This document shows, in pieces, positions 702 to 62,796 of a stretch of DNA of 64,000 nucleotides. The stretch is taken from contig JBMGUZ010000005.1 in NCBI GenBank assembly GCA_051530055.1, forward strand, positions 71,736 through 135,735, given 5' to 3'. The notes under the pieces are model-generated. The model made no database searches. It was given only the letters and a program-made list of their open reading frames with translations, and had not been told where the DNA came from. The stretch's first letter is position 1; each line of letters begins with the position of its first letter. Made by a program: the position numbers and the translations under genes. The DNA comes from Neoechinorhynchus agilis. Taxonomy: Eukaryota > Animalia > Acanthocephala.

Positions 702-3446
702 GGTTTGTGGATTTTTGTTAGGCGGTCGATACTAATAAAAAGGTACGATGGTCGAATATGGAAACTAGACAAATCACTACATTTGCCCTTTATGTTCAAC
801 CGGACCCGAACTTCAGGGCTCAAAGTAACCAAGAGCGGTCGCAAAGAACCTGGTAATAGACAAACTGCGATTACTAAGGAGTTCATTGGAACTAGGGATT
901 ATTCGGAAAGATCTGTTTACCGATATGAACCAGTTGTTCTACATGTTTCCAATCTGGACTATAAAATGAGTCGAGAAGAGTGGAGTCTATATTTTCACAA
1001 ATGCTTCTCACAGATAGCCAGCATCATCAAGATCGAACTACGTGATTCCAACCCGATGAACAGTAATGAACGCACTTATCGAACAAAGTCACTCAATGGA
1101 TTTATCACGGTTGCTCACGAATCTGATGCAATGCAAATCATAAGCAGATTTCATAACAAAAAAGTGGGATATCGTCGTCTACAAATCCATATATTGGCAC
1201 GCAATGTTGAGCGTAACGGCCGTCAAAGTAATGTAATAGATCTTGAGCTTCTGAAAGATAGGATCTCTTTCTTACTTTCTGGTCATGATCAGATGACGCT
1301 TACGGATTTGAACAATATTTACCGTCAGCATTTCACTGATTATAATATAACGAGCACTGAGTTGCTTAAGATTCCACGGGTAGTTGACGTTATTAGTTCA
1401 ACAAATAGAGGTATATCGGTAAGATTGCGTGACACTTGGGGTTCGGATTCGGATGCAAAAGTCAGCAATATTGAGCCATCTGATTGGCAACCCTTACAAT
1501 TGCGAGTTACCTGTGACAATTGTCGTAGTGCTACTGTATACTCACCAATGGAAGCTACCGTTAAGGTTGAATCTCCGTCTTTGAGCACGTTCAGTGGAAA
1601 CGTTCGGAGATTGTTGGAACAACACGGCGGATCGGTGGATTTATCTCGATTTGTGTCTTGCTATAATGCTTTATTTAAACCACTGATCACGAACGCATCT
1701 TCTGGCATTTGCTTGGAACATTACATTAGCTGTGTGGAGGGCGTTACTATCATGTCTGATTCTACCAACACCCCCCAATGTGGAGAAAAATGCGGATCCG
1801 GTTTTTCTACCCTTTCTCCGGACTACCAGATAATAAAAAGAGTATCGTTGTATGAAGTATCTAATCGACAATCGAACAATAAACCATTATGTACGATAAT
1901 TCAATCCAAGACAACACTAGAGCGTGAGATTTTGAAGATATTAGAGAACGAAACTCACTGTGTGATACCAGCGTGTACGTTTTTGAACGCCTATCACCGT
2001 CGATTTCATAGACAACTACGAGTAGCCGACTATGGATGTCGAAAAATCAGTGAACTATTTCAATCATTGCCCGCGTATTTACAAGTCATCGGATCATTTA
2101 ATGATCAATACCTTACATTGCCTCATACCGTTCAAATGCAAAGGTTTCAATTGTCTCTAAGAAGGATATTCAGATCGACAAACAAAGAGTCAATAAATCT
2201 TGAAACTTTACTCGATTATTGGACGCTGTTAATCGGAAAGGCTTTTGATCCATATGATTTCGGCGTTACCTCAATACTTGATTTGTTGTATTGTCTTCGA
2301 TCATCCAAAGAATTTAAGATAGTCACAACATCAGTGTCTTCTACAATCTTTAGATTCGTTAAATCTAAACAATGCCTTAACTTAACCAATGATATTTTGA
2401 ATATTATGATTGACAAAGGTGGACTTCAAATTCGATGTTATGACTTACTAAACGAATTAGCCAACAGGCTAGGGAAACGATTTGCAGATTTTACAGATCT
2501 TGAATACGACTTTGATCTACTTTTAGACTATGTCGACTGTTCCTTGATTCAGTTATCAGAATGTCTCGCTACTATGGAACAGCAGGTTACAGTAAGTCAA
2601 ACTGGCCTTAAACTGGTACTGGGAGCTAAACTAGTCAAATTAGTTTCTAGAGGCGGCCGAAACTCGACCAACATTTCAGATTTGAAGCATTTGTGGTTTT
2701 CGGAAGAGATTGACGCACTTGACATCAATGCCTATGGATTCATTGATTTTTCTGATATGTTGATACACATGAAGGAGTATGTGAGTGTTCTTGGTAACGG
2801 CTATGTAGAAATATGCCCCCGTCGAATTCGCTGTATTCTTCTATCAACTATAATTGACCTATTAGATACCCAACTCAATTACGAAGATCAAATAGAACTC
2901 GATATATACGAATTCCAATCTAGAGTTAAAAATCAGTTCAATGTCCAGGTCAGATTATGTGATATCGCTTCTTGTCTGGGTGACGAATTAGTCTCAATAA
3001 AAATTTCATCATTCAAATCGATTGATACAGTTCGCATTTCTGGCACAAAGTGTCTTATGTTCGCCAAGGCAATATTATCAATTTTCTATGAGCGATATGA
3101 TATGATCAGACTGAACAATTATCCGCCCGGATATTCTAAACCTACGAGTGAACTTTGTCTAGATGAAATAATGCACATTTATGAACGAAAATTCGGCTTA
3201 CCTTTAGACCCAATCAATTATGGATGTTACTCGTATCCATCGCTTTTGTCAAGGATGCCTGACATTATCTCATTTCGACATCTTGTTACGAATGGTGGAT
3301 CGGATCTTACTTTAATTTCGTTATCCCTTGCTTTCCAGTCCCTTTATTACCATTGGGTCAATTCCGTAAAAGTTGGGAATGCGAGCCAATTGATAAGAAA
3401 TAAAATAGAGCAATGCTCACCGTTAAACAAATTCGTCGACAACTGA
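702..3446 (+). CDS. MARF1: MARF1/limkain-b1-like protein (one RRM followed by multiple LOTUS/OST-HTH repeats); large single exon, N-terminus uncertain
   Basis: 913-aa ORF. VVLHVSNLDYKMSREEW...DAMQIISRFHNKKVGYRRLQI resembles the second RRM of MARF1, followed by repeated LOTUS-type motifs (YHRRFHRQLRVADYGC, FDPYDFGVTSILDLL, YERKFGLPLDPINYGCYSYPSLL). In-frame TAG at 699-701 doubles as a polypyrimidine-AG acceptor (ctcttttagtttttag); first ATG is at 792. Confidence 0.85.
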   Translation, partial: GLWIFVRRSILIKRYDGRIWKLDKSLHLPFMFNRTRTSGLKVTKSGRKEPGNRQTAITKEFIGTRDYSERSVYRYEPVVLHVSNLDYKMSREEWSLYFHKCFSQIASIIKIELRDSNPMNSNERTYRTKSLNGFITVAHESDAMQIISRFHNKKVGYRRLQIHILARNVERNGRQSNVIDLELLKDRISFLLSGHDQMTLTDLNNIYRQHFTDYNITSTELLKIPRVVDVISSTNRGISVRLRDTWGSDSDAKVSNIEPSDWQPLQLRVTCDNCRSATVYSPMEATVKVESPSLSTFSGNVRRLLEQHGGSVDLSRFVSCYNALFKPLITNASSGICLEHYISCVEGVTIMSDSTNTPQCGEKCGSGFSTLSPDYQIIKRVSLYEVSNRQSNNKPLCTIIQSKTTLEREILKILENETHCVIPACTFLNAYHRRFHRQLRVADYGCRKISELFQSLPAYLQVIGSFNDQYLTLPHTVQMQRFQLSLRRIFRSTNKESINLETLLDYWTLLIGKAFDPYDFGVTSILDLLYCLRSSKEFKIVTTSVSSTIFRFVKSKQCLNLTNDILNIMIDKGGLQIRCYDLLNELANRLGKRFADFTDLEYDFDLLLDYVDCSLIQLSECLATMEQQVTVSQTGLKLVLGAKLVKLVSRGGRNSTNISDLKHLWFSEEIDALDINAYGFIDFSDMLIHMKEYVSVLGNGYVEICPRRIRCILLSTIIDLLDTQLNYEDQIELDIYEFQSRVKNQFNVQVRLCDIASCLGDELVSIKISSFKSIDTVRISGTKCLMFAKAILSIFYERYDMIRLNNYPPGYSKPTSELCLDEIMHIYERKFGLPLDPINYGCYSYPSLLSRMPDIISFRHLVTNGGSDLTLISLSLAFQSLYYHWVNSVKVGNASQLIRNKIEQCSPLNKFVDN

Positions 3447-4227: not shown

Positions 4228-5839
4228 TTACAGCGGATCAAGTACCTGCATCTTGGCGGTTCCCCTGTGGGCACGGTTGTTGTGGAGAATCGCAAGCTTG
4301 TAGAAGGTGGTAGTATAATTGCATGATGTGCACCGGACAGCTCCGCCTTGCAAATGCAATCCCAGATGATCCACTTGATTCTCGAGTGCACAATCTATGC
4401 GCACTTTGCAAAAAGAGCAAATAATATTGTCTTTTTGAAGCTTCACGGTATTGGATTTCTTAAGATGCGATTTCGAGAGCGTCTTCTTTTTGTTCGAATG
4501 AATGAAGACATCGACTTGTCGACTGATTTCCATTATTCCCTCATACCTCTCAGGGTAGTAGGCAGTGTAGATCCGGAAATAATCGAGGAACATTTGTTCA
4601 ATTTGTTTTCCTTTTGAGTGTGCATTCACCTTTTGTCTCATTTCCAAAAGGCGGCCAGCGATGTGCTGCAAGAGTTGGTCGAAAGAGAGGTTTTCATAGA
4701 GAATAAATCCACACAGTGATTCAGTGTTCAAAATGGTCCCGAAAGTGCTCTCGTATAATTTTAACGTGTTCATGGCTGTATTGTTTCCCAAATCATGATA
4801 AGACTCGTTCAATACGCCCACCGACTGATGAATCTGTGCGATGTGTTGGCGCATTGACTCCTGACTTTCTCCGCGATAGAAGCATTTAGCGCATTTGAAC
4901 TGCTTCAATGGATTGATCAAGGGCATTGAGGATGGAAGATTTGGTTCGCCAATATAAAAGCGTGGAACATCGATCGGCACTTTAGACTGGGCCACCAAAT
5001 GGTTCAATTGGAACATGTCCTTATGACCTGACTCGTTTTCCATCTTTATAAACTTTTGCGGGTGCGATAGCTCGGCGGATCTATCTAGCGCGCCCGCACA
5101 AAACGGTTGACGTTTTCGTCGGTGGCTTGAGTGACGATGTCTCTCCAGGATGTACATATCGATTGTGGCCTTCGCTTCCTCCTCCGGTAAGACCTCTACA
5201 ACCGCTTCGTGTGGCTCGTATTTTTTCCTGTTCCGAATGTGCTTTTGGACGTCCGACTTATAGTTCGCTCTTTGGCCACAAAATGAACATTTGAACGGTT
5301 TGAGGTTATGGTGTGCCGCCATGTGGATATAGAATTTGTCAGTTGAATAAGTCCCGAACTTGAAACAGATATCGCACTCCATTCGACCCGCTCGTTGGCT
5401 CCTTGGACCCGGCAGTCGCACTTTCATGGACGACATCGCAGGCGTTGGCAGAACTGATTTAGCGCCCGTTGTGTCCCTACGATAGCAACCCTGTTCAAGT
5501 TTAAACCTTTCTTAAGGTGTACTCACATTATTCGACTCGTGATAGATACAACTCTAGGTTGGTCCTTATGCTTTCTGCTTTGATGCTTGCATACATCGGC
5601 CCGATATTTGGATTTGTACGGACAATAATGGCACTCATACAGTCGACATTGAATCTTTTGTCCACTTGAGAGTGCGGACTCCGGTTTAATGGAGGTTTCC
5701 CTGGTTAAACGATTATCCGAGTACTCATTAGAAGATATGGCTAAAAGATCGAGTCAAATGTCACGCGAACTAGACACTTACCCAAGTACGCATTCAACTC
5801 AGCGTGGATTTGCTTGGGAGTAATCGCCGATAGTTCCAT
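4228..5839 (-). CDS. C2H2 zinc-finger protein, 3 exons: 5839-5782, 5740-5527, 5476-4228 (~506 aa)
   Basis: The 402-aa ORF extends upstream in frame across two GT-AG introns (5781-5741, 41 nt; 5526-5477, 50 nt) with consistent phases, adding another finger (YECHYCPYKSKYRADVCKHQSRKH). About six C2H2-type fingers in total. The start codon is tentative; the frame stays open to an AG near 5888. Confidence 0.8.
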
Positions 5840-6887: not shown

Positions 6888-7440
6888 AGCTAAAGTTATA
6901 AAACCTTTTCGTAAATGCAAGACTTGGTTTTTGAAAATATGAATTCATTTCCTTCAGGAATGTCGATGCTTCGCGGTCACATTGACATCTTCACTGTCCG
7001 TTTTCATCCCGAATTGTGGAATTGAAACAAACAGAAATCTTCATCGATGGATACAAAAAATTTTCTTTAATTTTTTTCGGTGCCCTCTGAAGTGTCCGAG
7101 CGGACACTGTACTCGTCATTGGGCTTTGGCCTGAGGCCGCAACTTACTGTAAATTGTTTCGAGATAGACGTGAAAGTTAGAAAGCTGTTTTTCGCAGTGA
7201 GAGTTCGTTAGCGAAAATCGATACTCTTTTAATGTTCTTTGAAAAGTGAGCCTTACCTTAACTCACGGAGAAAAACTTCTTGCGCTCTTCGCTATCTATG
7301 AACTCGTCAATAAACACCTTACCTTGAAAGTTGCGACGAATCCAACAGAGCTTAAAAAAAACTAAAATTATAATTAATTTTTACCTTTCAATACAAGTAT
7401 ATTTGAATCTTTGCTAAAAACCAGAGGGAGTGAAATATAA
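6888..7440 (-). pseudogene. 5' part of intron-bearing PTP-like gene remnant, copy 1 (ends just before the DYINAS motif)
   Basis: Same sequence as in the 13.7, 38.3 and 49.2 kb copies, with GTAAA/GTAAG...AG mini-introns on the minus strand. Confidence 0.35.
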
Positions 7441-8171
7441 AAGTCGTTAAAATAGTCAAGAGTTTCCATCGCAAATTCTACTTAGTATACAACGCCTATG
7501 CTTTTTCGAGGCAATAAAAAGAGTTAACGATATTCTTCATGTCATTTCAGGCCAATGATCTTTCAAGGAAAATAACTACAAAACCGCTTTTTAGACATAT
7601 CAGAATATTTCACAACGGAACACCGAAGCTTGAAAGGCTGTTTCTACAGTCGTTGGACAGCATTTTATTAAAAATACATGGAGACTTCTTGTTCGAAGAA
7701 TGAAATGATGGATGAGCAATAAAAAGCTCAGGAAAATATTATTGCTACCATTAAAATTCGAATTCGATGCCCTAAAGTGTTGAATGGAGGTTTCGAGCAT
7801 CGTCGTATCCGAATTTAATGGCAATAATTTAAGTGATTTTATGATCTTTTTGCAATGCAAATTCTCTCTTTTAAGAATCGCTTCTACGGAACCTCATCCT
7901 ATTTCTCTTCTACTCTTATCATTTGCAACTTCGTGTACACGCTTACCAACGCTCTCACTAATTCAAATTTAGAACATTGGAGGATTGGCTACCACAAATA
8001 AAGAAATAGTACGATATAAAAATCAAGTGCTCCCAAATATTTGTATGATTGTACAAGTGCTAATGAGCCAAGGCCTTGTTCGAATATGAAACATTTTTAA
8101 TTTCACGAACAGTTACAAAACTATATAATAATAACACATTTTATTAATAATCGATGCTTAACTTTGAACGG

Positions 8172-9017
8172 TCAGAAAAATATCCTTCTGAAGTAGTTGA
8201 ATGCCGCAACGGCCACTTGGTAGACGGCATCAATAATATTCTTTATTGTTGTCAATCCATTCCAAGGTTTCGATACGATATTCGGCTCCGTTTGCGTGCT
8301 ACTTTCTTGCAAATCTATTATCTTGCACGTCGCTGGGCGTACATAACGACCTTGAGGTTCTTTTGGTTCTACTTCACTAAATAAAGTGAAAAACTCGCTG
8401 CATTTTTCGAATTCCAACGACGACTCATTAAATATATCGGTTGATTCCTGATAATCGAGAAACGATTCGTAGTAATCTTCGTTTCCATTCCAAACGTGAT
8501 TAAAGGCCGGATTCTCACAATAGAGAAGAGGTGAGCCATATTCGTCCATTCCTGATCGTGAATCGTAATAATCAAAAGTCACGTTCTCGAAACCTGGTGG
8601 AGTTGAGAAGTATCCTTCGTTTTCGGGCTCGTAATCGTAATAAGAAAATGAGCAATTTTCAAAACCTGGTGGAGGTAAGCAATATTCTTCATTTCCAATC
8701 GATGAATGATTATTACTGAAGTCATCTATGCTTGGTGGTGACTCATTGAAAATAAAAGTGAAATCATCAAAGCCGGGCGGAGGTGCACAATTATTTATAG
8801 TATTATCTGCGTTTTCCAAAATTTTTTCGACTTCTCGATCGAGGTAAATATCATCATCGAAGGGATTATATATTTGGTGACCTTGGTGAATAATGTTGAA
8901 CGTTGGTGGATCTGGATGACTGAAACTATTGGGTTGACCAGAGATGTGGTTCCGCAGGAATTGTGCGCTTTCCTCGATTGGTGGTGCCCTTATCCCGAAT
9001 GGTTGTCTTGTCGTCAT
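8172..9017 (-). CDS. Orphan 281-aa acidic, aromatic-rich protein with three PPGF motifs, copy 1
   Basis: Intact ATG-to-stop ORF. Putative 45-nt 5'-UTR intron 9088-9044 (GTAAAG...CTAAC...TTTTAG). AATAAA on the minus strand at 8145-8140. Intact second copy at 39638-40483. Confidence 0.7.
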   Translation of the reverse strand: MTTRQPFGIRAPPIEESAQFLRNHISGQPNSFSHPDPPTFNIIHQGHQIYNPFDDDIYLDREVEKILENADNTINNCAPPPGFDDFTFIFNESPPSIDDFSNNHSSIGNEEYCLPPPGFENCSFSYYDYEPENEGYFSTPPGFENVTFDYYDSRSGMDEYGSPLLYCENPAFNHVWNGNEDYYESFLDYQESTDIFNESSLEFEKCSEFFTLFSEVEPKEPQGRYVRPATCKIIDLQESSTQTEPNIVSKPWNGLTTIKNIIDAVYQVAVAAFNYFRRIFF

Positions 9018-10599
9018 ACTTCAAATCTGTAGCTCTGAACTGTCTAAAATTAGGAAACTACGGTTAGTCGAGATTTTGGAGGCTTTACTTTCTTTATCAG
9101 GTTTTCTAATGATCCACGAAAAAGTTCAGTTACTTAACAGCAAAATGTTTCTATAAACCTGACGCAGCGCTTCGAATGGCAGGTGATTTTCAAATCATTC
9201 CAAATCAAAACTAATGCAATTTCTGCAAATTTTATGACATTTCATATCACTAAAACTCCGCTGAATTGCAACATTCTGATTCGAAAATTCTTTACTGTAT
9301 CGCTTGCGACACTTATCAAGACATTACAACGGATATCACAAACGTATTGATTGTCTACGGTTGAAACACCGATACGTGTTAAAGAAGTCGATTTTTATCT
9401 GTCGATTGAACCGTAAAATTAATGACACACAACTAATGAGGCGTGAAAATTCGTTTCGGAACAAGCGACTTAGTTGTTGTTAATACCTTACAGTTACTTT
9501 AGCATTAAAATTCGATGCTTTTTACAAAGACAGGTAATTAGAGCATGCTGATTGGCTACTTTTCATTGAGGAAACCATACACGTGATGTTCCGAAATATG
9601 TGGAGGGAAAAACGTTTGTGCTAATACCTCGCTATCTATTGATCGATTAACCCATTTCATCAAATTTTACTTCCAAAAATACCCCAAAAATACAGATTCA
9701 ATTCGAGATCTCATTATGTAAATTTGTCCGAAATTTCCACCCTCGATTTAATAGAAAAATTTCTTGCTTGGATTTCATTAGATTTTTGAAAGGATGCAAC
9801 GCGGACGAAAATGGTCTCGAAACCGTTATCCAATATCTCTTCTCTTTTGAAGCATTTAATTTAATTGAAACCGTTTTGTGGTCATTGAACGAAGAAAAAG
9901 ATTTGAATTCAGCCCCCCTGCAGGTAAAATGCAAATATGGACGCTAATTTTGAACTTGCGGAATCGAAAACAATTCCACCAAGCTCAAAGGCCTCAATCT
10001 TATAATTCCAACTTAAAAAATGAATGAAATAGTAGGAAAAGAAGCACTAAAAACGACGATGATAGTTTCACCAATATGCTAAAATGTTTATTGTGCCAAA
10101 AAATTAATAGTATCAATACTCTCAGTGTGCATTTCGGACCATTGCATATCAATGGGAGATACAAAAGCAATCGAGAGAATTGCTATAAAATATTAAATTA
10201 AAAGCTATCTTGTGAACGTCATAGTATGAATCCAAAAGACGATATCCGTGTAGATTCTCCCAAGCTCAGGGTAGAAATGAAGTATCGAAATATAATTACA
10301 CCTATGAACAAATCAACATCTAAGGAGGAAATGGATAAGCTTATTGAGATTAAATTGCCAAAAGATGAATGTCAAATTCAAGAGTAAAGTAACTATCAAA
10401 AAGAAAGTGTCCCTTCCAATTAATAAAAGTATCCATAAAAATCAATAGGTTGTAGATTCTATCTCTTGATAAAAAAAACAGCAATTGACATGTCTTAATG
10501 ACAACATTTTTCCTTCCGCAATATTAAAAAGCACGTTATAAATATTGCTCACGCGCTGGAATAATGACGTTCCTTGATCGATTTGGCATTGAGAAATAT

Positions 10600-10870
10600 T
10601 ATAGTTCTTAATAATCTTTGCATTTATTTGCATGGTATCGATGGTTATGAGGATCGGGAAATCGAGAAGTTTCAACGACCAACAGAATCAGCTGGTGGAA
10701 GTTCGAGAAAGAGGGAAATGAATAGTGATGCCTTAGCGGTCCTCAGGATCCCATTCGTTAGAGAAAAACCCAAGAGCGACATCAGGAGGCTCAAAAAGAG
10801 ACAGGTCTATAAATTCCATCAGTTCACAGGAGCCCTCCGAAAAAGCATCCGGCAAGCAATGTCCAAGGAC
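10600..10870 (+). mobile_element. Penelope-like RT thumb/linker fragment (module segment E); also ~32230-32560 and ~41450-41700
   Basis: NGYGYREIEK...LRIPFV...SDIRRLKK resembles the PLE linker between RT and GIY-YIG. Confidence 0.5.
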
Positions 10871-11420
10871 GATTGACGTCAAAAATGCCACTTTGCACGA
10901 GGAGTAATGCAAACTATTAGACTAAATGTGTTCAATGCGCACAAGAACAGATTCGAGTCGTCTACATTGGGAAGATGGACGTATTTGTGAACAGTTTCGT
11001 AATGCATTACCTAAAGAATGCCACTTCCTTTTCAGTTGGTTTCGCTGCTCAGTACCTTCAAGATGCATTAACCCGCTTGGTCGATCGACAGTGAGAGTGA
11101 GGGCTCAAATTCTAGATCAGATATCCATGGGACACGATCTTATTTTATTTGAATTTGGACAGTTCGATTTAAAGACTAAAGTGGTTTTCAATGACAAGAC
11201 TATCATTAATTTCAAACCATCAAATAAAATCTAATCTGTATAAAATTAACTGAAATGAATAATATTATGTCCAAGGCCCCCAATGATAACTTGGTCACCT
11301 TTTCATGTCTAAGGAAACAGAGACCCTCCAAATTAACAAATTTTCGTATGAGGTTATCAATAATCAGTGAATTGCAAGGAAACATGACCTTAAGTAAATT
11401 TTAAAAAGCAGAATTTTACA
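10870..11420 (+). repeat. Module segment F containing a 102-aa ORF of unknown origin; also ~32590-33160, 41700-42250, 57190-57700
   Basis: Four near-identical copies. The ORF is open at 10926, 32661 and 57210 and frameshifted near 41930. Confidence 0.85.
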
Positions 11421-11449
11421 AATATCTTGCAAATGAAAATCTAGAAAGA

Positions 11450-12335
11450 GATGTCGACAAAGATGGGTGGGTTCCAAGATGTTGGGTTAATTCGTCGTTC
11501 TCAACCCCCAAGAAATTACGCTATTGATCTCAGAATGGCGTGAGAACCTTCCTCCTGACTATTGGCAAACGAAACCGTGTCGCCCGAAAGCATCAACCAA
11601 AGACCCACATCGAAAGCGATGGGGCGTGCATATCGGGACACCAAGTCTTAAGGAAACTGCGATCCTCGTTACCTCATCAGTGAGAAGAGTTCCCAGGGAT
11701 GCCAGAGGAGCAGACTCCAACCACGCCCCGATTTTCGTGTCGAAATTGCCGACAATCGAGAAACCTGAAAGTAGAGAGCTGTGAGTTCTCGCGGCGAAAG
11801 GCCTTTCCCAGATCAACTGTCTGAGGCCATTTACGGGAACATTGTTAGTTCCTGCATGCTGGTACCATTCTTCAACTGCCACCACAAATTCTTGGTCAAG
11901 ACAAAACTTTTCCCTTAGAATTTTCTTCGCCAAGAAAGGCATGACACAGGCAATGAAGATTGTCGCCACGCCTCATCTGAGAGCTGTACATTTAAAATAC
12001 GCTAGAGACAAGCCCTCACCTTGTCGTCGAGCTCGGCCAATCCTTCTTTATGTTTGAAGATTGTTGCCAATAACAATTTCGGGATAAAGAGTGCGTTCTT
12101 TATCCGAAATAATGCTTCGTGAGCCGAAAGAGCGCTGACCCTATCACACAGCAACGATAGTTTCGGTATGATGCGGCCGATCTCAGCTTCCACATTTGAA
12201 TCAAATGCGCAACTACCCAGGAGGCTGAGTTGCTCTGGAGGCTGAACTCTATGTCCATTCTCGAGGTCTCCCTAATCAGCGTCTCCAAATCGCGCAGTAC
12301 AACGGAGGGATCACCTCCGAGCGTAGCCGAATACC
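11450..12335 (-). mobile_element. CRE-clade non-LTR retrotransposon family 1, decayed, copy 1
   Basis: RT C-terminus plus CCHC/RLE start (CGSLVDAFGRHGFVCQ...RHSEIN); 3' end truncated and fused to segment F. Confidence 0.85.
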
Positions 12336-12354
12336 ATAATTTGTTCAATGACTT

Positions 12355-13440
12355 TTACCTAGGCAAGGAAACTGTTTATAATGCTGGTAAGCATTCTTCA
12401 GAATGAAAGTCACAAAGAGTTTTGACCACGTTGTTGAGGCCCGAGGTTTTAATCCACGATGTGGCTGCTTGCTGCGAAGGTACGAATTTTTTCTTAGAGA
12501 CAACGCGATACCATTGAGAAGAGTTGGGAAGGAGTGATTTGATCCTACCTCTATCCTTGTTCAGTTGGAAACGAGCTCTACAAGGCCAGTGTAATGCTGA
12601 CCAGAATTTAATTCCTCCCGTAAAGGGAAAGAGCACGCGGGGTTTCATCGAAGCAATTAATTTGCCTAACTATAGTTAGGAGTCTACACCCGGTAAATAA
12701 GTATTTATTAAAGACGTTTCGAAGCTCGTAACTCTTCGAGCCTTGCTTCCAATGGCCAGAGGTCTTTGAGCACAATGTCCCCATTTTTGACACTTGTTGC
12801 ATTTCGGATAGGTACAGTCTTGTTGTGAAATTTTGTTTATAAAGAATTTTACTTCCATAGATTGAAAAGAGCATGGAGATGTTGTTAGCTTGTCTTGAAC
12901 AGCAACAGGTGTTTTAACCACTGCCCGAGGAATCAGTTTCCCACGTAGTAAAGACTTTAAGAAGAATAACAGCTTACATCCGAACTTTTCGAAAGCGACC
13001 CTGTCTTCATTATCTATCTCCGGTGAGAGGTCGGAAACGATGAACGTAAATGTATAGCTTTAATCCGTGTATTGCAGGATAGCATCATCCTTAAATCTAG
13101 TAAGGAAAAACTCCTGAATTGTTTCTTAAATAAATCGGAGATGAAGTGAATTTTCAAAACTAAACCATTAAGCGAAATTGACTTAATATGATTGTAATCA
13201 TCTTTGAGTGATTTGAGCTACGGCGCTGCGTAAGCCTTGTTAAGGGATTCCCTGGGTTGAACGGGGTTCGTCGTTATTGAGATCCAAAATGGTCATTTTT
13301 TAACTTGGTATCGAGGTACTGTGAATCCCTTGAATTCGCACGATGTTGAGGTTTTCGTTGTATGTTCCCGAGGTGTTCATGGCTCACTCCATGAATGAAA
13401 ATCCACCCATGTCTTCGTCCATATCCATTGATTCCGTCAC
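12355..13440 (-). mobile_element. LINE ORF1 (gag-like zinc knuckle) remnant, copy 1
   Basis: YPKCNKCQKWGH knuckle; colinear with 34610-34982 plus 37346-38030. Confidence 0.6.
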
Positions 13441-13479
13441 TTAGTCGTCTTAACGAGTTTAATTCATTGTTTTAACATT

Positions 13480-14330
13480 ATTTTCTGGTCGACATGAAAA
13501 AATACAAAATTAATGATTTGTTATTGATTTGGTTTCGATTTGTAGAGGGAACATAACGCGTTTTATTAATAATGCGTTCAAATGGGCATAAATTTTTGTT
13601 CATTGGTACACTCGACAGTGTTCGACCGGTTGAGATAATACATTTTTTAAGAGCAATAAATAACCTTAGCACTGAATTGTAAAGACCTTTAGAGTTTGTT
13701 GAAGAAACAAAGTCAAATGAAACGTTAATGTAATCTTTCTGGCGAAAAGCTAAAGTTATAAAACCTTTTGCGTAAATGCTAAAATTGGTTTTTGGAAGTA
13801 TGAATTCATTTCCTTCAGGATGTCAATGCTTCGCGGTCACATTGACATCTTCAATGTCCATTTTCATCCCTAATTGTGGAATTGAAACAAACAGAAATCT
13901 TCATCGATGGTAACAAAAATTTTCTTTAATTTTTTTCGGTGCCCTCTGAAGCGTCCGAGCGGACACTGTACTCGTCATTGGGCTTTGGCCTGAGGCCGCA
14001 ACTTACTGTAAATTGTTTCGAGATAGAAGTGAAAGTTAGAAAGCTGTTTTTCGCAGTGAGAGTTCGTTAGCGAAAATCGATACTCTTTTGATGTTCTTTG
14101 CAAAGTGAGCCTTACCTTAACTCACGGAGAAAAACTTCTTGCGCTCTTCGCTATCTATGAACTCGTCAATAAACACCTTACCTTGAAAGTTGCGACGAAT
14201 TCAACAGAGCTTAAAAAACTAAAATTATACTTAATTTTTACCTTTCAATACAAGTATATTTGAATCTTTGCTAAAAACCAAAGGGAATGAAATATAAAAG
14301 TCGTTAAAATAAATCGTGCATTCAAAAATT
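13480..14330 (-). pseudogene. PTP-like gene remnant, copy 2
   Basis: KDYINVSF variant of the DYINAS motif; same exon/intron-like layout as the other copies. Confidence 0.4.
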
Positions 14331-15554
14331 AACTTCATTGGGGTTGAGTCAAGAGTTTTCATCGCAAATTCTACTTAGTATACAACGCCTATGCTTTTTC
14401 GAGGCAATAAAAAGAATTAACGATATTCTTCAGGTCATTTCAAGCCAATGGTCGTCTTTCAAGGAAAATAACTACAAGACCGCTTTTTTAGACATATTAG
14501 AATATTTCACAACGGAACAGCAAAGCTTGAAAATCTGTTTCTACCATCTTTGGACAGCATTTTATTAAAAATCGATAGAGACTTCTTGTTCGAAGAATGA
14601 AATGATGGATGAGCAATAGAAAGCTCAGGAAAATATTATTGCTACCATCAAAATTCGCATTCGATGCCCTAAAGTGTTGAATGGAGGTTTCGAGCATCGT
14701 CGTATCCGAATTTATTGGCAATACTTTAAGTGATTTAATGATCAAGAATTACCAAACGATCCGGTCATCTTTAAAAAATAATTTATATTAAATAGTTTTT
14801 ATTCGACGTTTTTTAGGTTGACCATGGTATAAAATATTTGAAATATTACAATATTGTTTGTGTAACTTTAAAAGACTGTAAAAATTATACGATCACAATT
14901 ATAGTTGCAAATGATTAAAAGGTATCAAATGATAAATTAAGATGTAGAACAAAGTAATTCTAATTTACAGCTTTGTCGTGCTTTGAGAACGGCGTTACCT
15001 CTGCACAACAAAACGTGCGCGGAAGGTCAAGTAATTTAAAAATTAAATTTTTGTAGAACCGTTAGAAAATCTTGTGTCCCCTTATCATAGATATTGCAAT
15101 TATTTTATTTTTTTGAAGTCTGATCAACCGGTAACTTTTATTCAGTTTCTATGTGGGGCCTTTTTACGGTTTATATCGGTGGGCTGCGCGCCCAAGGAAA
15201 ATTATCAGCCGTGAAAAAGGCTACACATAGATATTTTATTTTATATTTGAGCACTGATTTTGATCACGGCTGTTTAAAAAGAAACTCAAATCAACAGATG
15301 AATTGATTTACTTTTTAAAATATTTTCAATTTTCCATGGTATTTATCATAAGCACTTACTTTGAATAACTACAGTCGTAGAGATCAATAAATCGTTGTTT
15401 TGCAATCTTGTTTTACTTTATTCGATTAGAAAATAGTTTTACGCGGCCAAGTTTAATTCGAAAATCTGATGTTTGATTTAAAGAATGCTTGCCTTCACTG
15501 GATCTTATGTCAAGCAGAATTGCAGATGAATGTAAATTCATATGTACTATATCG

Positions 15555-17040
15555 ATTTATTTTTTCTTTACATTACATTGGGCCCATTACATGTCATCCG
15601 GACGCTGGCAGCGTTCCATCGCTGGACCGCCAGACTCAAGTTTTGTCGCAAGAAAGTGATTGACTGCGGCTCCGTCGCATTCGCGATACGTCGCCCCAGT
15701 TCATTCACGAATTCCGCTGCGGCCTTTTCAAATGCCCCGTAAGTCTCTACTCCGAAAGGCAGGAATAAAAACTGAGAGGCTAACTCATGATACTTCGCGG
15801 TCCTACGTTCCTCCGCTCTCGTTGCCGCGGCTTCTGCGCCTAATTTAGCGGTCGTTATATTGCAGTTTGCCAGCGTATCGACGCATGTTGCGTCCCATAT
15901 AAGGCATCTGCCACGTGATCGGGGAAAGATCGTTACCTCGTCAGGACGTTTCCCGTCTGGGCGGCAGAGATTTTTTGGCTCCAGGATGCAGGGCACATGA
16001 ATCGATCTCAGCGCTCGACTTATGATAGCATTGATTTCAGCATGGCGGGGAAAACGTCCTGGGGACAGTTTACATGGGAGTCCCTTGGTGTCCACTGTGA
16101 CACCACATCGACATTTATGAGCGACGCAAATGTCCATTCCGAATCTGAGACAGTAAGCAATACGGAAGGTCTCATCATCCAGCAAAGTGCCCAAATTTGA
16201 GGATGGTAGAGCATCAAGCCAGGCTCCAGATTCTTTGGTCGAACAAGCAGCGAGACGGATCCCAGCCATTTTATCCATCTGGTCTTGTAATTGAGATTGA
16301 ACCCGATGAACGAGTGGAGAATCCAACGCTTGCTGTTTGTTGCTTTCTCCAGGTATCTGTGTTTGCCAGCTTAATGTTGTCCAATTTCACAAAAGCTCGA
16401 TCGAAATGCTCCGCGTTGACCTCATTAAAAATATTAGTTGAGTACTTAAGACTAGCACAAATGGAGGCAAGGAAAGCCGGTAAAGTGACATCTTTAGTCT
16501 GTAGTAGTCCGGAACCCCCACTTAATGTCGGTAATGTAGCTTGTCTCCATGATGTATCGTCAGAGGCGATGTTAAGCGTTTTCTCCAGCTCATCGCAAAA
16601 TAGGCAGTCCAATTTATCGAGGTCGTCCGTGTTGTCGAAGGCAGGAACAGTCCTTAGTTTGTGCAGGAGCTTAGGCATGAAGAGGCAGTTCTTTATCAAG
16701 AAGATTGCTTCATGGCTCTTCAAATCCGATGTTCTCTTGCATATCAGCTTTAGCTCTGAAGCGGTCATTTCAATATCCTTTGGAAGATTCTCCTTCATCA
16801 CGCAAGATCCCAATAGACGAAGCTTACTAAGATTAATGGTTTCTATTCCTAGTGCAACCGATGAAAACTCATCCAATATAATTGGCTCGTTTTTTCCCTT
16901 CATGTTTAGCAGCAGAATTTGGCACTTTGCGAAATTGAGTTGCAACCCCAGTTCTTTGGTTTTTTCTACGAGTATTTTAAAATCGTCCAGAACTATTGCT
17001 GCTACGTTTGTCGTTGTCGGACTTTACATCGTTGCCGAAA
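15555..17040 (-). mobile_element. CRE-clade non-LTR retrotransposon family 2, 5'-truncated, copy 1
   Basis: RT C-terminus, CCHC and RLE nuclease (RHAEINAII...LEPKNLCRPDGKRPD...LIWDATCVDT...FGVETYG); A-rich 3' tail near 15555-15570. Confidence 0.9.
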
Positions 17041-17679
17041 ACTAACTGTTAGTGAACTTTTCAAACTTTCAGCGCTTGCTTTATTCTCAAAAATATGAAT
17101 TTTGGACGCATTATCCATTTTTTATTTTTTAAAAACCTATTGTTAGTCGTCGTATGCGCTTTTGAAGAACTTCGGAATCGTTTTTAGATTCTAATAACCA
17201 AGAAATAAGCGTTTACGTTTTGGTTTTTAATTTTTTTGTCAGTTCAAACCTTAAAATAATTATGTTCTTTACGTAACATTCAGGCGCATTGCTTTTGGCT
17301 AATTTCAAAGCGATAATCGATGTTTTATTCTTTGAATGCCGAATAAGTTTAAAGGGTAAATACGGACCGCTATGCCAAATTCGACGTTTCGGGTTTTATG
17401 GACTTTTTCTTCCCATTTACACCAGCAAATAAAATAGAACAACAGTGCAATATTCTTCGTCCGTTTAACGATCCAAAATTAATGGTGAAATCTTTTGAAC
17501 CAGACAAATAATTTATTGCTTCCGGTTTTTTTATCGTTATGTTTGTTTATGGTGGAAATTGTGAAGGAGTTTTATTAAATCCCATAAAAGGAGCTCCGTT
17601 CAAAGGCCTAGATTTTTGTATCTACACGACGAAAGCTGAATCATTAGTTAGGTTTATCCAAGCCGTCCGAAAGCTTCTG

Positions 17680-18849: not shown

Positions 18850-21800
18850 GTGGATCCGCGGGTTCGCCAAGCGCCGTGACCTACATATAAGCTGCGGTGA
18901 TCTAACGTTTTGTTTTGTCAAGGAGTTTCGGAATTACTAGCATATGATTCGCTTTCTTACGCTCCATGGTTACATTCCTATGATGTATATTGCCTCCATT
19001 ACCAATCTCCTCCGTAAATTAGCCTCAGGCTGTATTATTGATGCTCGTCGGAAGTCCACACGGTGTTTTTCCTTCTCCTGATGATTGGGGATCGCGGAGG
19101 AACCATCAAACCTCCTGCACGCCTGTTTGTGTTGCGCTAGTCTTTTGGACAATCCTTGCATCGTTTGCCCCACATAGATAGGATCACATTCGATGCATGG
19201 GATTTTATATACTCCTTTGTGGCATTCTCTACTGTTCTTCTTCTTGAGCAATCCCGTGGTAGTTAGACCTTTGTTGTACGAGATTCTTAGGTTCGGATAT
19301 TTCCTCTTCAGACTATTTAGCTTCTTACTTGTTGTATCGCTCACGAACTTAAGAGATCCATACATCTTGGGTTCGGCTGTCTTGGTTTCTTTTACTCATT
19401 TTGGACTGTTGATTCGTTGCGTGCCCCGCTTGATTATCAACCATTTCGATATTCTTGATTGAGTGTGCTCACTTTTGACGTTATTTGTTTGGCTCGTTGG
19501 AGGTAAGAAGTTACTGTGGATAGTTTGTGTTGCATAGGCTGGTAACTGGTCCATACTGGGGGTCCCCAAGTTAGGTTTATGGTACATCAACGTTTCGACT
19601 GTACCTCTTTTTGCCCGATCCATGAAGGAGATGTGACCATTTTCCTCTTGCTCAACTGACCATTGAATATCACTACTTCGCTAATGACTGGTCCATACTG
19701 GGAGTCCCGAAGGTAAGTTAGGTTTATGGTACATCAACGTTTCGACTGTGCTTCTTTTTGGCCGATACATGAAAGAGATGTGACCATTTTCCTCTTGCTC
19801 AACCTACCATTGAATATCACTACTTCGCTAATGACTGGTCCATACTGGGAGTCCCGAAGGTAAGTTAGGTTTATGGTACATCAACGTTTCGACTGTGCTT
19901 CTTTTTGGCCGATCCATGAAAGAGATGTGACCATTTTCCTCTTTCTCGACTGACCATTGAATATCACTACTTCGCTAATGACTGGTCCATACTGGGAGTC
20001 CCGAAGGTAAGTTAGGTTTATGGTACATCAACGTTTCGACTGTGCTTCTTTTTGGCCGATCCATGAAAGAGATGTGACCATTTTCCTCTTGCTCAACTGA
20101 CCATTGAATATCACTACTTCGCTAATGACTGGTCCATACTGGGAGTCCCGAAGGTAAGTTAGGTTTATGGTACATCAACGTTTCGACTGTGCTTCTTTTT
20201 GGCCGATCCATGAAAGAGATGTGACCATTTTCTTCTTGCTCAACCTACCATTGAATATCACTACTTCGCTAATGACTGGTCCATACTGGGAGTCCCGAAG
20301 GTAAGTTAGGTTTATGGTACATCAACGTTTCGACTGTGCTTCTTTTTGCCCGATCCATGAAAGAGATGTGACCATTTTCCTCTTGCTCAACTGACCATTG
20401 AATATCACTACTTCGCTAATGACTGGTCCATACTGGGAGTCCCGAAGGTAAGTTAGGTTTATGGTACATCAACGTTTCGACTGTGCCTCTTTTTGCCCGA
20501 TCCATGAAAGAGATGTGACCATTTTCCTCTTTCTCGACTGACCATTGAATATCACTACTTCGCTAATGACTGGTCCATACTGGGAGTCCCGAAGGTAAGT
20601 TAGGTTTATGGTACATCAACGTTTCGACTGTGCTTCTTTTTGGCCGATCCATGAAAGAGATGTGACCATTTTCCTCTTGCTCAACTTACCATTGAATATC
20701 ACTACTTCGCTAATGACTGGTCCATACTGGGAGTCCCGAAGGTAAGTTAGGTTTATGGTACATCAACGTTTCGACTGTGCTTCTTTTTGGCCGATACATG
20801 AAAGAGATGTGACCATTTTCCTCTTTCTCGACTGACCATTGAATATCACTACTTCGCTAATGACTGGTCCATACTGGGAGTCCCGAAGGTTAGTTAGGTT
20901 TATGGTACATCAACGTTTCGACTGTGCCTCTTTTTGCCCGATCCATGAAAGAGATGTGACCATTTTTCTCTTTCTCGACTGACCATTGAATATCACCACT
21001 TACTTCGCTGGTGACTGGTCTATACTGGGGGTCCCCAAGTTAGGCATATGGTACATCACCGTTTCGACTGTACCTCTTTTTGATCGATCCATAAAGGAGA
21101 TGTGACCATTTTCCTCTTGCTCAACTGACCATTGAATATCACTACTTCGCTAATGACTGGTCCATACTGGGAGTCCCGAGGGTAAGTTAGGTTTATGGTA
21201 CATCGACGTTTCGACTGTACCTATTTTTGCCCGATCCACCTCTTGCTCAACTGACCATTGAATATCGCTACTTCATTTAAATCTTCCTTAAGTCTGTTAT
21301 GGTCGATATTCTGGTTCGTAATGATAAACGCATCATCCACATATCTTCTCTTCAACCTATGATGTATCGTTTGGAGGTTAGAAACTTGTCCTCCCATTTG
21401 CGCATATAAAGGTCTGCCAGGACTGGTGCTGGAGGTGATCCCATAGCCATACCATCATACTGTTCATAATATTTGTGATTGAATTCGAATGACGTTTTAC
21501 ACGTACACCAACTTAGGAGGTCCAGTCCTGGTTCAGGACAATTCTGTTCTAGTAAATAAGCAGCCATATTCATTGTCTCCACTAATGAGATGTTAGTAGA
21601 TCGAGAATTAACGCCCGCTGTGAAAAATTGATGTTCGTGATGTTGTCCCTGTCTGATGAAAGCAGCGAAAGCTGGGCTATCGGCAATATACGAGGTCGCA
21701 GGTGGTTGAGATTGCCGAAGTATACTATTTATTTTCGTTGCCAATTTGGGATTGAACGAATCATATGAAGCGATGATCTGACGGAATTGTAAACTCGGCT

Positions 21801-28229: not shown

Positions 28230-31205
28230 TCTTTATACTCTTTGAATATCGATTCGGACCACACACATATAGATAGCGTGTGCTAGTTGGAAGACGGACT
28301 TCGAATAATAAACAAGTTGTTGTTGTATGGCTACCACAACTGGCGACGAGAGTGGTTTATTAAGAACAAACCACAACTGGCGACGAGAGTGGTTTATTAA
28401 GAACAATTCTCCAATAACAGCAACAATTATTAGAACAGTTGCTTCCGGACGTAAGCAAGTTTGAGCTACGCCTTAAGCTTGAGTATACGCTGTAAGAATA
28501 TAGTCAATCTAAAGTAAGCAGTATCCTAACCAATTTAAGCAACTTGTCCACTCTACTTAATGATAATGTAATTTATATCATGTAAGTGAATAGAACTGAA
28601 TATTGTAAAATATGGTCAAATAAATGAGTCTCTAGCCAATTCGAACACGACTGCCAGGAAGGATAATGTGCGAGCAACGGGATTCCGGCGCTTTCTTGAG
28701 GAAAAAGAAAGCCGGCGAAGCTACAAACAACAAATCGGGTTCCACTTTGCTGCTCAAAATGTCACCGATCGACTAATGATGAGAAACATGTTCCTATCAT
28801 GGATTGGGCCCTCGGCATACCAACTACTGTCAAGTCTAAATACGGGAAAAGATGTCAACAATTATGATTACCATGAATTAATAGAATTGCTGGATACCCA
28901 TCACTCACGCCCAATCCATATCGTCGCTGCGCGTTTCGCATTTAGTCAATACGAAATGAAAAATGGTCAATCTTATGCATCATGGATTGTAGACCTACGA
29001 GAAGAAGCTGGATTGTGTCAATTTTTCAATAAATCCATCAATTCGGAAAAAGATGCGATCGATGACCGGATCAGAGACCAGATAGCGATTGGAACGCCAC
29101 ACGATGAGGTGAGGAACAAAATTTTGCAAATGGCAGCACCTTCTTTGAGCGGCGTGATGAAGATTTGTGAAACGTTTGAAATGATAAAGAATACGTCGTG
29201 GAGGAAGCAGTATGTAGGTCAAGAACTTCCGAATGATTCGTACACAGCAAAATATATGCAAGACGGAAAGTTTTTTGAAATTGACATGATTCGAAAACGG
29301 CATAATACACGTGATCAGAGGGAGAAAAGACCTAAACAACGCTGTAAAAGATGTGGAATAGAGCACGAAATATCAGTGTCCAGCAAAGAACAAGAGTTGT
29401 TTCAAACGCTAAAGGACGGGTCATTTCAGATCGTGTTGCCGATCAAGGTACCCAGTAGATCAAATTGAAGAACTAAATACGATAATGGATGTAAACCACA
29501 CAACGATAGTGGAGAATCAGATTCCAAGAATAAATGTCCAAATAAATGGGATACAAATAACGATGGAGTATGATACTGGTGCCAGTGTATCGGTGTTGAC
29601 TATGACATATTGGCGTAGAATAGGCCAGCCAACTTTGAATGCTGCCAAACCCCTCAAGGCGTATGGTGGCAAACGGTTAGTAACCCTGGGAAAATGCAAT
29701 ATCAATGCGAGTTTGGGAGAAAGACAAAAGCAGTTAGAAGTCATGGTGGTACGAAACGGGAAGTATAGTCTATTTGGGCGTCCTTGGATAGACGTTTTCG
29801 AAGTTCCTTGGCCTGATGTCGTATGCCACAGGCTTGATAGCCAGCAAACAGAATCAGATATCGATTCGGTCGTTACCTCAATCGATCAGCTACTATTGAA
29901 GAATAAGTCGATTTTCGATGAATCGAATACTCCTGTCAATAATACCGAAATATCACTAGCAATAGCACCCAATGCCACACCGAGAAGATGTGCAAGTCGA
30001 AGAATTCCACTGACATTGAAGAACAAAGTAGAAAACGAGTTGATAAGGCAGTTAGAATGAGATGTGCTGGAGAAAGTGGATCTACGTAAAGACTCTATCG
30101 ATTGGGCTGCGCCGATTGTGATTGCAAGGAAACCAGTGGTGATATCAGGATATGCGGAGACTTTAGAGTAACAATTAATCCACATCTAACAATCGATAAC
30201 TACGCCATTCCTACATGGGAAGAGATCGTCAACCAAATAGCGGGAGGTGAGTAGTATTCAAGGCTCGATTTGAAAGATGCTTATCTACAACTACCTGCCA
30301 ACGCGGACTCTAGGAAATACTTGACAATCTCGACCCATCGAGGATTTTTCCGATACAAACGACTGCCATTTGGAATCAGCTCAGCTCCGGCAGTTTTTCA
30401 ACTTAGTGAGTGGTTGGCCCCTCCGGAACTACATAAATATTCGTCTCGCAGACAAGAGCTTTCAGTAGAGGACGGAGTCATCCTATGGTTGCAACGCCTT
30501 ATAATCGCCCAGGCATTGAGGAATAAAGCACTTGATGTCTTACATACTGGACACCCCGGGATAACAACAATGAAAGACCTAGCAAGGTATTATTGTTGGT
30601 GGCCATCCGTACGAGAGGACATCGAGCACAAGTTGGGAACGTGCGTGAACTGGCAGAGCAGGAGAGCAGATGCAGCAGAAACTCCGATGTACCAATGGGA
30701 TGTGCCAGAGGAACCGTGGACCCAAATCCATTTGGATTTTGCGGGATCAATCAATGGACAATCGTTTCTAGTGCTTATAGACACGTATAGCCACTGGCCG
30801 GAGATTTTTCCAATACACTCAACATCTGCATTCGAAACCATCGACAAATTAAGATCCGTTTTTGCACGATTCGGTGTCCCAGCCGAAATCATATCTGACA
30901 ATGGCCCACCCTTTCAGTCCGCGCAATTTAAACAGCTTTGTTCAACAAATCGGATAAGGCATATCCGTTCATCTCCCTACCATCCTCAAACCAACGGTTT
31001 GGTAGAGAGATTCATCAGAACCTTCAAGAGACGAGTACACATCAAAAACGACTGGTATAAAAATATGCTCTCAATTCACCAATTTCTTTTAACTTACCGG
31101 AATACACCACACAAAACTAGCCAAAAAGCACCAGCTGAGACATTACTTGGACGGCGGTTGAAGACCGTATTTGATCGTATACGTCCGAATTTACGATCGA
31201 CTATA
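28230..31205 (+). mobile_element. Ty3/gypsy LTR retrotransposon: LTR end, PBS, gag, protease, partial RT, integrase; internally deleted and 3'-truncated
   Basis: gag with DRIRDQI and CCHC; MEYDTGASVS; LKDAYLQLP...PFGISSAPAVFQ joined directly to the pre-integrase region; integrase H-H-C-C, HLDFAG, SDNGPPF, QTNGLVERF. Cut at ~31205 by the module repeat. Confidence 0.92.
28334..28406 (+). promoter_or_regulatory. Primer-binding site TGGCGACGAG, tandemly duplicated within a 37-bp direct repeat
   Basis: Follows AATAAA and ...TACCACA (LTR end). Complementary to the 3' end of eukaryotic tRNA-Ser(GCU) (...CTCGTCGCCA). Confidence 0.7.
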
Positions 31206-38049: not shown

Positions 38050-38900
38050 TATTTTCTGGTCGACATGAAAAAATACAAAATTAATGATTTGTTATTGATT
38101 TGGTTTCGATTTGTAGAGGGAACATAACGCGTTTTATTAATAATGCGTTCAAATGGGCATAAATTTTTGTTCATTGGTACACTCGACAGTGTTCGACCGG
38201 TTGAGATAATGTATTTTTTAACAGCAATAAATAACCTTAGCACTAAATTGTTAAGACCTTTAGAGTTTGTTGAAGTAACAAAGATAAATGAAGCGTTAAT
38301 GTAATCTTTCTGGCGAAAAGCTAAAGTTATAAAACCTTTTGCAAAAACGTCGAATTGGTTTTTGGAAATAATAATTCATTTCCTTCAGGATGTCGATGCT
38401 TCGCGGTCACATTGACACCTTCAATGTCTTTTTTCATCCCGAATCGTGGAATTGAAACAAACAGAAATTTTATCGATGGATACAAAAATTTTCTTTAATT
38501 TTTTTCGGTGCCCTCTGAAGCGTCCGAGCGGACACTGTACTCGTCATTGGGCTTTGGCCTGAGGCCGCAACTTACTGTAAATTGTTTCGAGATAGAAGTG
38601 AAAGTTAGAAAGTTGTTTTTCGCAGTGAGAGTTCGTTAGCGAAAATCGATACTCTTTTGATGTTCTTTGAAAAGTGAGCCTTACCTTAACTCACGGAGAA
38701 AAACTTCTTGCGCTCTTCGCTATCTATGAACTCGTCAATAAACACCTTACCTTGAAAGTTGCGACGAATCCAACAGAGCTTAAAAGACTAAAATTATAAT
38801 TAATTTTTACCTTTCAATACAAGTATATTTGAATCTTTGCCAAAAACCAGAGGGAGTGAAATATAAAAGTCGTTAAAATAAATCGTGTATTCAAAAATTA
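38050..38900 (-). pseudogene. PTP-like gene remnant, copy 3
   Basis: KDYINASFI read on the minus strand near 38290-38310. Confidence 0.45.
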
Positions 38901-61855: not shown

Positions 61856-61857
61856 AA

Positions 61858-61905
61858 GACAATTTGAATTCAATCATTTTGAGTTAGTAGCTCAACCTAA
61901 ACTGC
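61858..61905 (-). tRNA. trnS1: mt tRNA-Ser1 (D-armless, apparent anticodon ACT)
   Basis: Anticodon stem TTGAG/CTCAA, loop CTACTAA; acceptor stem GCAGTTT/AAATTGT. Confidence 0.6.
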
Positions 61906-61907
61906 CC

Positions 61908-61949
61908 ATCAGATAACACCAAGGGATCAACAATCCCTAATAAACCTGA
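61908..61949 (-). tRNA. trnN: mt tRNA-Asn (GTT), truncated arms
   Basis: AGGGA-TTGTTGA-TCCCT; acceptor TCAGGT/ATCTGA. Confidence 0.7.
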
Positions 61950-62772: not shown

Positions 62773-62796
62773 GGACTACCTCCCCCTTAAAAGTAG

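Follow-up and report, generated by a model that had tools for sequence, protein, structure and literature searches.

The 64,000-nt stretch of the Neoechinorhynchus agilis assembly GCA_051530055.1 analysed here (contig JBMGUZ010000005.1, positions 71,736 to 135,735; referred to as the window) contains two intact copies of an open reading frame (ORF) of 281 codons, which belong to a genuine species-restricted 16-copy gene family that is already present in GenBank in the form of hypothetical proteins. Taken jointly, the data are best explained by a duplicated family restricted to this species, whose copies are subject to gene conversion, whose subfamily A is probably expressed and whose product is a multivalent scaffold of short linear motifs, a combination to which we give slightly better than even confidence. 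N. agilis is an eoacanthocephalan and a fish parasite; the assembly represents a 46-Mb genome with a BRAKER annotation (PMC12690905).

Both copies are located on the reverse strand and are defined by the following features:
8172-9017, minus strand: coding sequence (CDS) of copy 1, subfamily A, 281 aa, intact, stop codon included, identical to database protein P0005
39638-40483, minus strand: CDS of copy 2, subfamily A, 281 aa, intact, corresponding to P0001
8140-8145, minus strand: AATAAA signal of copy 1; AATAAA is present in 12 of the 16 copies, and copy 2 shows AGTAAA at 39606-39611

The two coding sequences differ at 10 of 846 nucleotides with zero indels, and the Nei-Gojobori method divides these differences into 5 synonymous and 5 nonsynonymous changes. 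In 100 simulated 64-kb windows the longest ORF starting with ATG comprised 146 codons on average and 251 codons at most, compared to 281 codons for the actual ORF. A comparison of the frames of the ORF showed host-like codon usage in frame 1 only. A preliminary description of this DNA, which was made from the sequence alone, had named two intact copies with 5 replacement and about 5 silent differences and no indels, an in-frame stop two codons before the ATG, and an acidic protein rich in Y, F, N and D. All of this agrees with our coordinates and counts, with the TGA found in frame in both window copies, and with a calculated isoelectric point of 4.2 at 46 D/E and 45 F/Y/W residues. The AATAAA which it placed after the stop codon was confirmed for copy 1, where it lies 26 nt past the stop, but not for copy 2 with its AGTAAA at the equivalent site.

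Besides the two copies in the window, five copies were found on a 99.6-kb contig, one each on a 23-kb and a 35-kb contig, and seven on chromosome CM121343, one of them at 219 kb and six in a 140-kb cluster at 1.25-1.39 Mb; the small contigs may include uncollapsed haplotypes, which would lower the true copy number. All 16 copies originate from N. agilis, the family CDS is a single exon, and the database entries are hypothetical proteins known from the NCBI genome annotation only. The copies form two subfamilies, A and B, which are about 95% identical in DNA (dS about 0.067) and have both kept the ORF. Subfamily A comprises ten copies, including those of the window, each of 281 aa and all of them intact. 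Subfamily B corresponds to the six-copy cluster on CM121343, in which two copies are intact (283 and 284 aa).

No domain was detected in the ORF protein by Pfam at E <= 10, and no relative was found among the PDB sequences. A word-indexed search of 5.8e9 proteins gave matches only inside the N. agilis family, an exhaustive hidden Markov model (HMM) search of 1.84e9 representatives returned the family itself and one spurious match, and metagenome as well as viral contigs contained no relative; the orphan status determined in this way refers to databases from which other acanthocephalan genomes may be missing. The spurious match, P0016 (3519 aa, E 4.7e-12), was rejected as a homologue, since a single 16/41 match had been counted nine times and the PPGF is not conserved. 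P0016 looks like a bacterial fibronectin-III-type perfect-repeat protein. Having no homologue outside the lineage, many paralogues and intact ORFs, the family shows the characteristics of a taxonomically restricted, tandemly amplified gene family. The orphan character that had been proposed for the gene was therefore upheld by every search, none of which matched a known transposable element (TE) ORF or a conserved host protein.

Two of the BRAKER models, P0006 (L007, 10001-11842) and P0002 (L012, 10001-11364), are chimeric. In both, the CDS exits after ...AVYQ at the same GT donor and is spliced into unrelated downstream exons, although the unspliced ORF of L007a is intact. Either this splicing is an artefact of the annotation, or it hints at alternative 3' splicing. 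For the family loci, no gene-level table is given in the N. agilis transcriptome paper or its supplement.

The two window copies are embedded in a larger duplicated region, within which the part common to both subfamilies could be delimited:
6888-12332, no strand assigned: larger duplicated module around copy 1, matching 38319-43269 around copy 2 and composed of several independently repeated pieces
7927-9656, minus strand: core gene unit common to A and B, -639 to +1091 from the ATG, 1.73 kb, consisting of 5' flank (about 640 nt), CDS and 3' flank (about 240 nt)

Over about 3 kb, 6888-9862 and 38319-41317 are 94.5% identical, and the module of copy 1 contains an extra segment of 622 bp at 9863-10484. 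The flanks of the two copies are 91.8% identical on the 3' side and 94.6% on the 5' side, both with indels. High identity extends beyond the ORF, as 7888-8171 is also about 98% identical between the copies. Among the family members, the homology ends at -244, -311, -457, -639, -958 or beyond -1499 on the 5' side and between +829 and +2010 on the 3' side, and at the ends of the core unit neither terminal inverted or direct repeats nor long terminal repeats (LTR), target-site duplications or a polyA tail were found. Since the boundaries vary and transposon termini are absent, segmental or tandem duplication inside repeat-rich DNA is the best description of how the family spread, which corroborates the duplication of repeat-rich DNA suggested before, now with 16 copies and variable breakpoints at hand. 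Furthermore, 261 of 741 informative site pairs in the A copies fail the four-gamete test, and these mosaic haplotypes indicate that the paralogues exchange sequence by gene conversion or recombination.

The region 6888-15500 consists of pieces, each of which was met about 10-20 times in the loci that were sampled. One of them, 7589-7846, directly adjoins gene copy 1 at its 3' end and recurs at 31209-31465, directly after an integrase ORF, and can for this reason be tied to a retroelement. The statement that the module carries TE fragments thus holds for this piece, but could not be confirmed for the other repeats, whose ten ORFs (at most 136 aa) gave no Pfam match. Scanning the window for Rfam families and tRNAs gave no match. 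In the B copies L001 and L007 (CM121343, 1.30-1.33 Mb), the sequence just 5' of -639, AATAATAAAACGTGTTATTATTATTATA, resembles the 3' untranslated region (UTR) of the gene itself near the AATAAA and looks like an old head-to-tail duplication junction upstream of the B units. L007 holds two gene copies 3.75 kb apart.

Within the protein, the following segments can be distinguished (coordinates of copy 1):
8754-8789, minus strand: repeat 1, CAPPPGFDDFTF, aa 77-88; copy 2 at 40220-40255; invariant in nine aligned full-length copies
8646-8681, minus strand: repeat 2, CLPPPGFENCSF, aa 113-124; copy 2 at 40112-40147
8574-8606, minus strand: repeat 3, STPPGFENVTF, aa 138-148; copy 2 at 40040-40072
8859-8867, minus strand: NPF followed by DDD, EH-domain-type motif, aa 51-56; NPL in copy 2 and L011 (two of the ten A copies)
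8178-8258, minus strand: C-terminal amphipathic or weakly hydrophobic helix, GLTTIKNIIDAVYQVAVAAFNYFRRIF, aa 254-280; AlphaFold2 (AF2) predicted local distance difference test (pLDDT) about 47

The three spaced repeats and the C-terminal helix match the preliminary description. The motif unit follows the consensus PP(P)GF-[DE]-[DN]-x-[ST]-F and occurs three times, with the PPGF starting at aa 80, 116 and 140, and repeats 2 and 3 extend further to PPGFENxxFxYYDx6(E/D)Y. According to AF2, run with a family alignment of nine sequences, the product is disordered and has no predicted fold: the mean pLDDT was 34.8, weak helices were predicted at aa 14-26 and 254-280 and nothing else with confidence, and the pLDDT stayed below 50 throughout aa 69-266. 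By composition and hydropathy analysis, neither a signal peptide nor an N-terminal hydrophobic stretch nor a true transmembrane segment was detected. The C-terminal segment, which was considered as a putative tail anchor (a single transmembrane segment within about 30 residues of the C-terminus) and contains D, Q, N and RR, reaches a maximum 19-residue Kyte-Doolittle mean of 1.2, compared to a usual transmembrane threshold of 1.6, at a hydrophobic moment of 0.45-0.56.

Upstream of the CDS, a short element with splice-like signals was located, in agreement with the candidate intron that had been described for both copies:
9044-9088, minus strand: candidate 45-nt 5'-UTR intron, GTAAAG/CTAAC/TTTTAG; copy 2 equivalent at 40510-40554

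In 15 of the 16 copies, the signals of this element have remained intact. A strict form of the pattern occurs in the window only at the two gene copies, compared to an expectation of 1.7 per 128 kb in what is a post hoc test, and a loose form is common (31 observed, 36 expected). Splicing is putative, and the AG of the element could equally serve as a trans-splice acceptor. Spliced-leader trans-splicing is present in bdelloid rotifers and absent in a monogonont according to the one paper found in a literature search, which does not cover acanthocephalans.

The comparison of the copies gives a mixed picture of selection on the protein. Pairwise omega values (NG86) were 0.36 for comparisons inside A, 0.64 for those inside B and 0.57 for A against B. 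Counted as distinct variants, those of B (10 synonymous to 35 nonsynonymous) and the fixed A-B differences (7 to 17) do not depart from the neutral expectation. For a corrected estimate, the flanks and their mutation spectrum supplied the neutral shares of 0.247 for synonymous, 0.70 for nonsynonymous and 0.053 for stop-creating changes. In subfamily A, the variants are distributed over the codon positions as 9, 7 and 16, i.e. with an excess at the third position, and the share of segregating sites is 3.8% in the CDS and 7.9% in the flanks next to it (p=0.003). Within the motif blocks, three in number and of 11-12 residues each, two replacements were observed where 7.1 are expected (p=0.02), namely G142V (L007a) and S138P (L003), both in B copies. 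Altogether, the evidence for constraint at the protein level is suggestive only, and the constraint appears to be concentrated on the repeat region.

Our preferred reading is that subfamily A represents a probably expressed, young and fast-evolving gene, expression being predicted, with a multivalent motif scaffold as its product. A number of observations weigh against it. The distinct A variants, with 11 synonymous to 22 nonsynonymous changes, reach p=0.05 against a synonymous expectation of 0.20, and the spectrum-corrected omega of about 0.7 for A and about 0.9 overall is not significant (p=0.17-0.30). The lower divergence of the CDS could be due to gene conversion instead of selection. Four of the six B copies are broken: one has lost its C-terminal end at a breakpoint, one has a stop at W252, one is frameshifted near codon 57 and one carries an internal deletion. 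The C-terminal helix lies below the transmembrane threshold and is predicted with low AF2 confidence, the residues after the PPGF are acidic, unlike those of known GYF and ALG-2 ligands, and the link from motif to reader is pattern matching only. Finally, the BRAKER gene models for the family may be ab initio (PMC12690905).

Several of these observations would also be expected if the ORF were a relic, once or never functional, that travels as a passenger of a recently amplified and concertedly evolving repeat complex, with the A copies being intact only through their youth and homogenisation by gene conversion. An omega indistinguishable from 1 under the flank spectrum, the disrupted B copies, the mosaic haplotypes, a polyA signal mutated in three A copies, and a protein without homologues or a predicted fold are consistent with such a relic. 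The 33 variants of the A copies would be expected to include only about 1.7 that create a stop, so that finding zero is unremarkable, and the near flanks of the ten A copies (-300 to -1 and +847 to +978) are indel-free as well; on both grounds, the A copies are intact largely because they are young. The earlier picture of an intact gene in dead surroundings is for these reasons weaker than claimed, and omega, which ranges from 0.36 to 0.9 with the method used (0.36-0.64 uncorrected, 0.7-0.9 spectrum-corrected), is not significantly below 1. On the other hand, a relic would not account for an ORF of 281 codons with host-like codon usage that survived the A/B split in 12 copies, for the enrichment of variants at third codon positions in A, for the avoidance of the motif blocks by replacements, or for the start context, upstream in-frame stop, splice-like element and promoter-proximal flank that are conserved in 15 of the 16 copies, and we consider it unlikely, though by no means negligible. 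That the ORF was multiplied as a cargo or accessory gene of a transposable or virus-derived element is a highly improbable explanation. It would fit the position of the copies among repeats, the retroelement piece 7589-7846, which in several A copies directly adjoins the unit at its 3' end, and the one lone copy 1 Mb from the cluster, which adjoins a reverse-transcriptase fragment. It conflicts with the lack of similarity to TE or viral proteins, with unit ends that vary between copies and show no fixed termini, and with the clustering of six copies within 140 kb instead of a dispersed distribution.

In the preferred reading of a scaffold, the protein would most likely act through its short linear motifs: the three PPGF motifs would dock a proline-motif reader domain, i.e. 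a GYF domain, pocket 3 of ALG-2 or an EVH1 domain, and the C-terminal helix may serve to keep the protein at a membrane or within an oligomer. The string PPPGF falls within the PPxxF class of Homer EVH1 and also occurs in a Homer1 EVH1 paper. As had been stated before, PPG-hydrophobic motifs are ligands of GYF domains: PPG-Phi is the GYF consensus, and tristetraprolin (TTP) with one PPPPGF and ZNF598 with three bind GIGYF1/2 (PMC10187677). The type-2 motif of ALG-2 is PxPGF, with [P/Phi]PX[P/Phi]G[FW]Omega as its refined form (PMC4346919), and the Toxoplasma protein GRA8 has three tandem ALG-2-binding elements containing PPPPGF and a C-terminal membrane anchor (10.64898/2026.07.20.739547). Accordingly, the assignment of the motifs to GYF domains is not specific, as PPPGF fits the ALG-2 type-2 motif and the Homer class too. 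All three motifs of the family match PPG-Phi, and only two of the three match ALG-2 or Homer. In the case of ALG-2, CLPPPGFE fits if E is counted as a large residue, CAPPPGFD is borderline and STPPGFE fails.

On this basis, two more specific models can be weighed, which we regard as roughly equally likely rivals, both of them quite improbable. In one of them, the protein would be a multivalent ligand of Smy2/GIGYF-type GYF domains, acting as an adaptor or decoy for 4EHP-GIGYF repression and being either a host regulator or a selfish suppressor of silencing. The full match to PPG-Phi with F at the Phi position as in TTP and ZNF598 (PMC10187677), the location of the three PPG[FILMV]-type motifs in a segment predicted to be disordered and accessible, and the depletion of replacements in the motif blocks speak for this model. 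It is weakened by the shared motif specificity and by the acidic residues after the motifs, which are unlike RPPPGL or PPPPGF in known contexts. A second module that would tie GIGYF to a target, such as an RNA-, AGO- or ribosome-binding one, was found neither by Pfam (E <= 10) nor among PDB sequences, and Pfam gave no RNA-binding, AGO-binding or ubiquitin-ligase domain that would link the protein to mRNA. In addition, N. agilis has kept only 15 microRNAs (miRNAs), a strongly reduced set (PMC12256650), and lacks 45% of the metazoan BUSCO genes, with losses enriched in regulatory functions (PMC12256650, PMC12690905). For the suppression of RNA silencing in particular, which had been part of the original proposal, no pointer was obtained, and no RNA-binding or effector domain was found by Pfam. 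In the other model, the protein would be an adaptor in membrane traffic, whose PPPGF binds pocket 3 of ALG-2, as in Sec31A, PLSCR3 and GRA8, and/or whose NPF-DDD binds an EH domain, and whose C-terminal helix places it at endoplasmic reticulum exit sites, at ESCRT or at recycling endosomes. Two motifs that match PxPGF, one of which (CLPPPGFE) fits the seven-residue form with E taken as large (PMC4346919), the precedent of GRA8 as a parasite protein using three tandem PPPPGF elements together with a C-terminal membrane anchor, the NPF with its acidic run at aa 51-56 and the amphipathic C-terminal helix agree with this model. The failure of STPPGF as PxPGF, the D or E at the Omega position, the change of NPF to NPL in two of the ten A copies and the absence of a signal peptide or true transmembrane segment do not. 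Since the motifs fit GYF in three of three and ALG-2 or Homer in two of three cases, a module linking the protein to mRNA is missing and miRNAs and BUSCO genes have been lost, we commit ourselves to the general scaffold mechanism only. A bolder version, in which the very young, species-restricted family, amplified to about ten intact copies and kept uniform by gene conversion, would code for a multivalent PPGF decoy that is tethered to a membrane and titrates a conserved proline-motif reader (GIGYF-4EHP or ALG-2), has in our view little probability; if it were true, translation control or vesicle/ESCRT traffic would be rewired in a parasite that has lost much of its regulatory toolkit.

The remainder of the window contains further features. 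An uninterrupted ORF of 913 aa at 705-3446 (plus strand) with OST-HTH/LOTUS and MARF1-LOTUS domains, a protein of the germline or RNA-decay type, sits 4.7 kb away from copy 1 in unique DNA and adjoins a C2H2 zinc-finger ORF at 4228-5436 (minus strand). A second duplicated segment, 15961-17646 and 51191-52876, is 99.6% identical and contains the overlapping intact ORFs 16197-17045 (plus strand, 282 aa) and 15568-16326 (minus strand, 252 aa), which gave no Pfam match; it could represent a further orphan gene that was amplified, or a young repeat. At 28668-31214, fragments of an LTR-type retroelement were found, with an aspartyl protease at 29485-30060 and a reverse-transcriptase tail plus integrase at 30270-31214, and a separate reverse-transcriptase ORF is located at 35990-37291. 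At the end of the window, an ORF of 217 aa at 62119-62772 (minus strand) matches Pfam COX3 (E 2e-15), and the region 61500-64000 shows a strong strand asymmetry with a GC skew of about -0.45 and an AT skew of about +0.4. The COX3 match and the asymmetry suggest a nuclear mitochondrial DNA segment (NUMT) or an assembly join with mitochondrial DNA; no tRNA or rRNA was detected in this region. A 147-bp satellite with 11.4 copies and 94% matches occupies 19568-21238, and satellite, NUMT and repeats together suggest that the contig is heterochromatic or pericentromeric.

Should the A copies be expressed, the family would represent a clean case of a gene family that was born recently or has diverged fast, in a gene-poor parasite genome of 46 Mb, with a copy number raised by segmental duplication and copies that gene conversion has made uniform. 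Apart from three copies of one short linear motif, no functional content can be recognised in it. In the case of expression, it would therefore be a tractable system for how proteins consisting of motifs only gain function and for which proline-motif readers survive in acanthocephalans. Without expression, the family would instead caution against reading function from intact multicopy ORFs in young repeats, which are weak evidence for it.

Compared to the known recruiters of GIGYF1/2 (TTP, ZNF598, and TNRC6/GW182 with PPGL), the family is alike in having several PP(P)GF motifs in a disordered region; with TTP and ZNF598 it shares the Phe at the Phi position, and with ZNF598 also the number of three motifs (PMC10187677). 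In contrast to these proteins, it shows no homology to them and no zinc-finger, RING or GW domain, and its motifs are embedded in the longer acidic-aromatic repeat PPGF-[DE]-[DN]-x-[ST]-F, with binding predicted from the pattern. To the ALG-2 type-2 proteins Sec31A and PLSCR3 it is similar in its PxPGF cores (PMC4346919), and to Toxoplasma GRA8 in being a parasite protein with three tandem motif repeats and a predicted C-terminal hydrophobic helix (10.64898/2026.07.20.739547). It differs from this group in that only two of its three motifs fit, the residue after the Phe is acidic, and a signal peptide, a type-1 PPYP and any homology are missing. From the usual secreted or surface antigen families it is set apart by the lack of a secretion signal. 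With the orphan families that are amplified in tandem in parasite genomes it has in common that current databases contain it for one species only, that its many near-identical copies lie in repeat-rich regions, that they evolve in concert and the protein fast, and that intact and decaying copies occur side by side.

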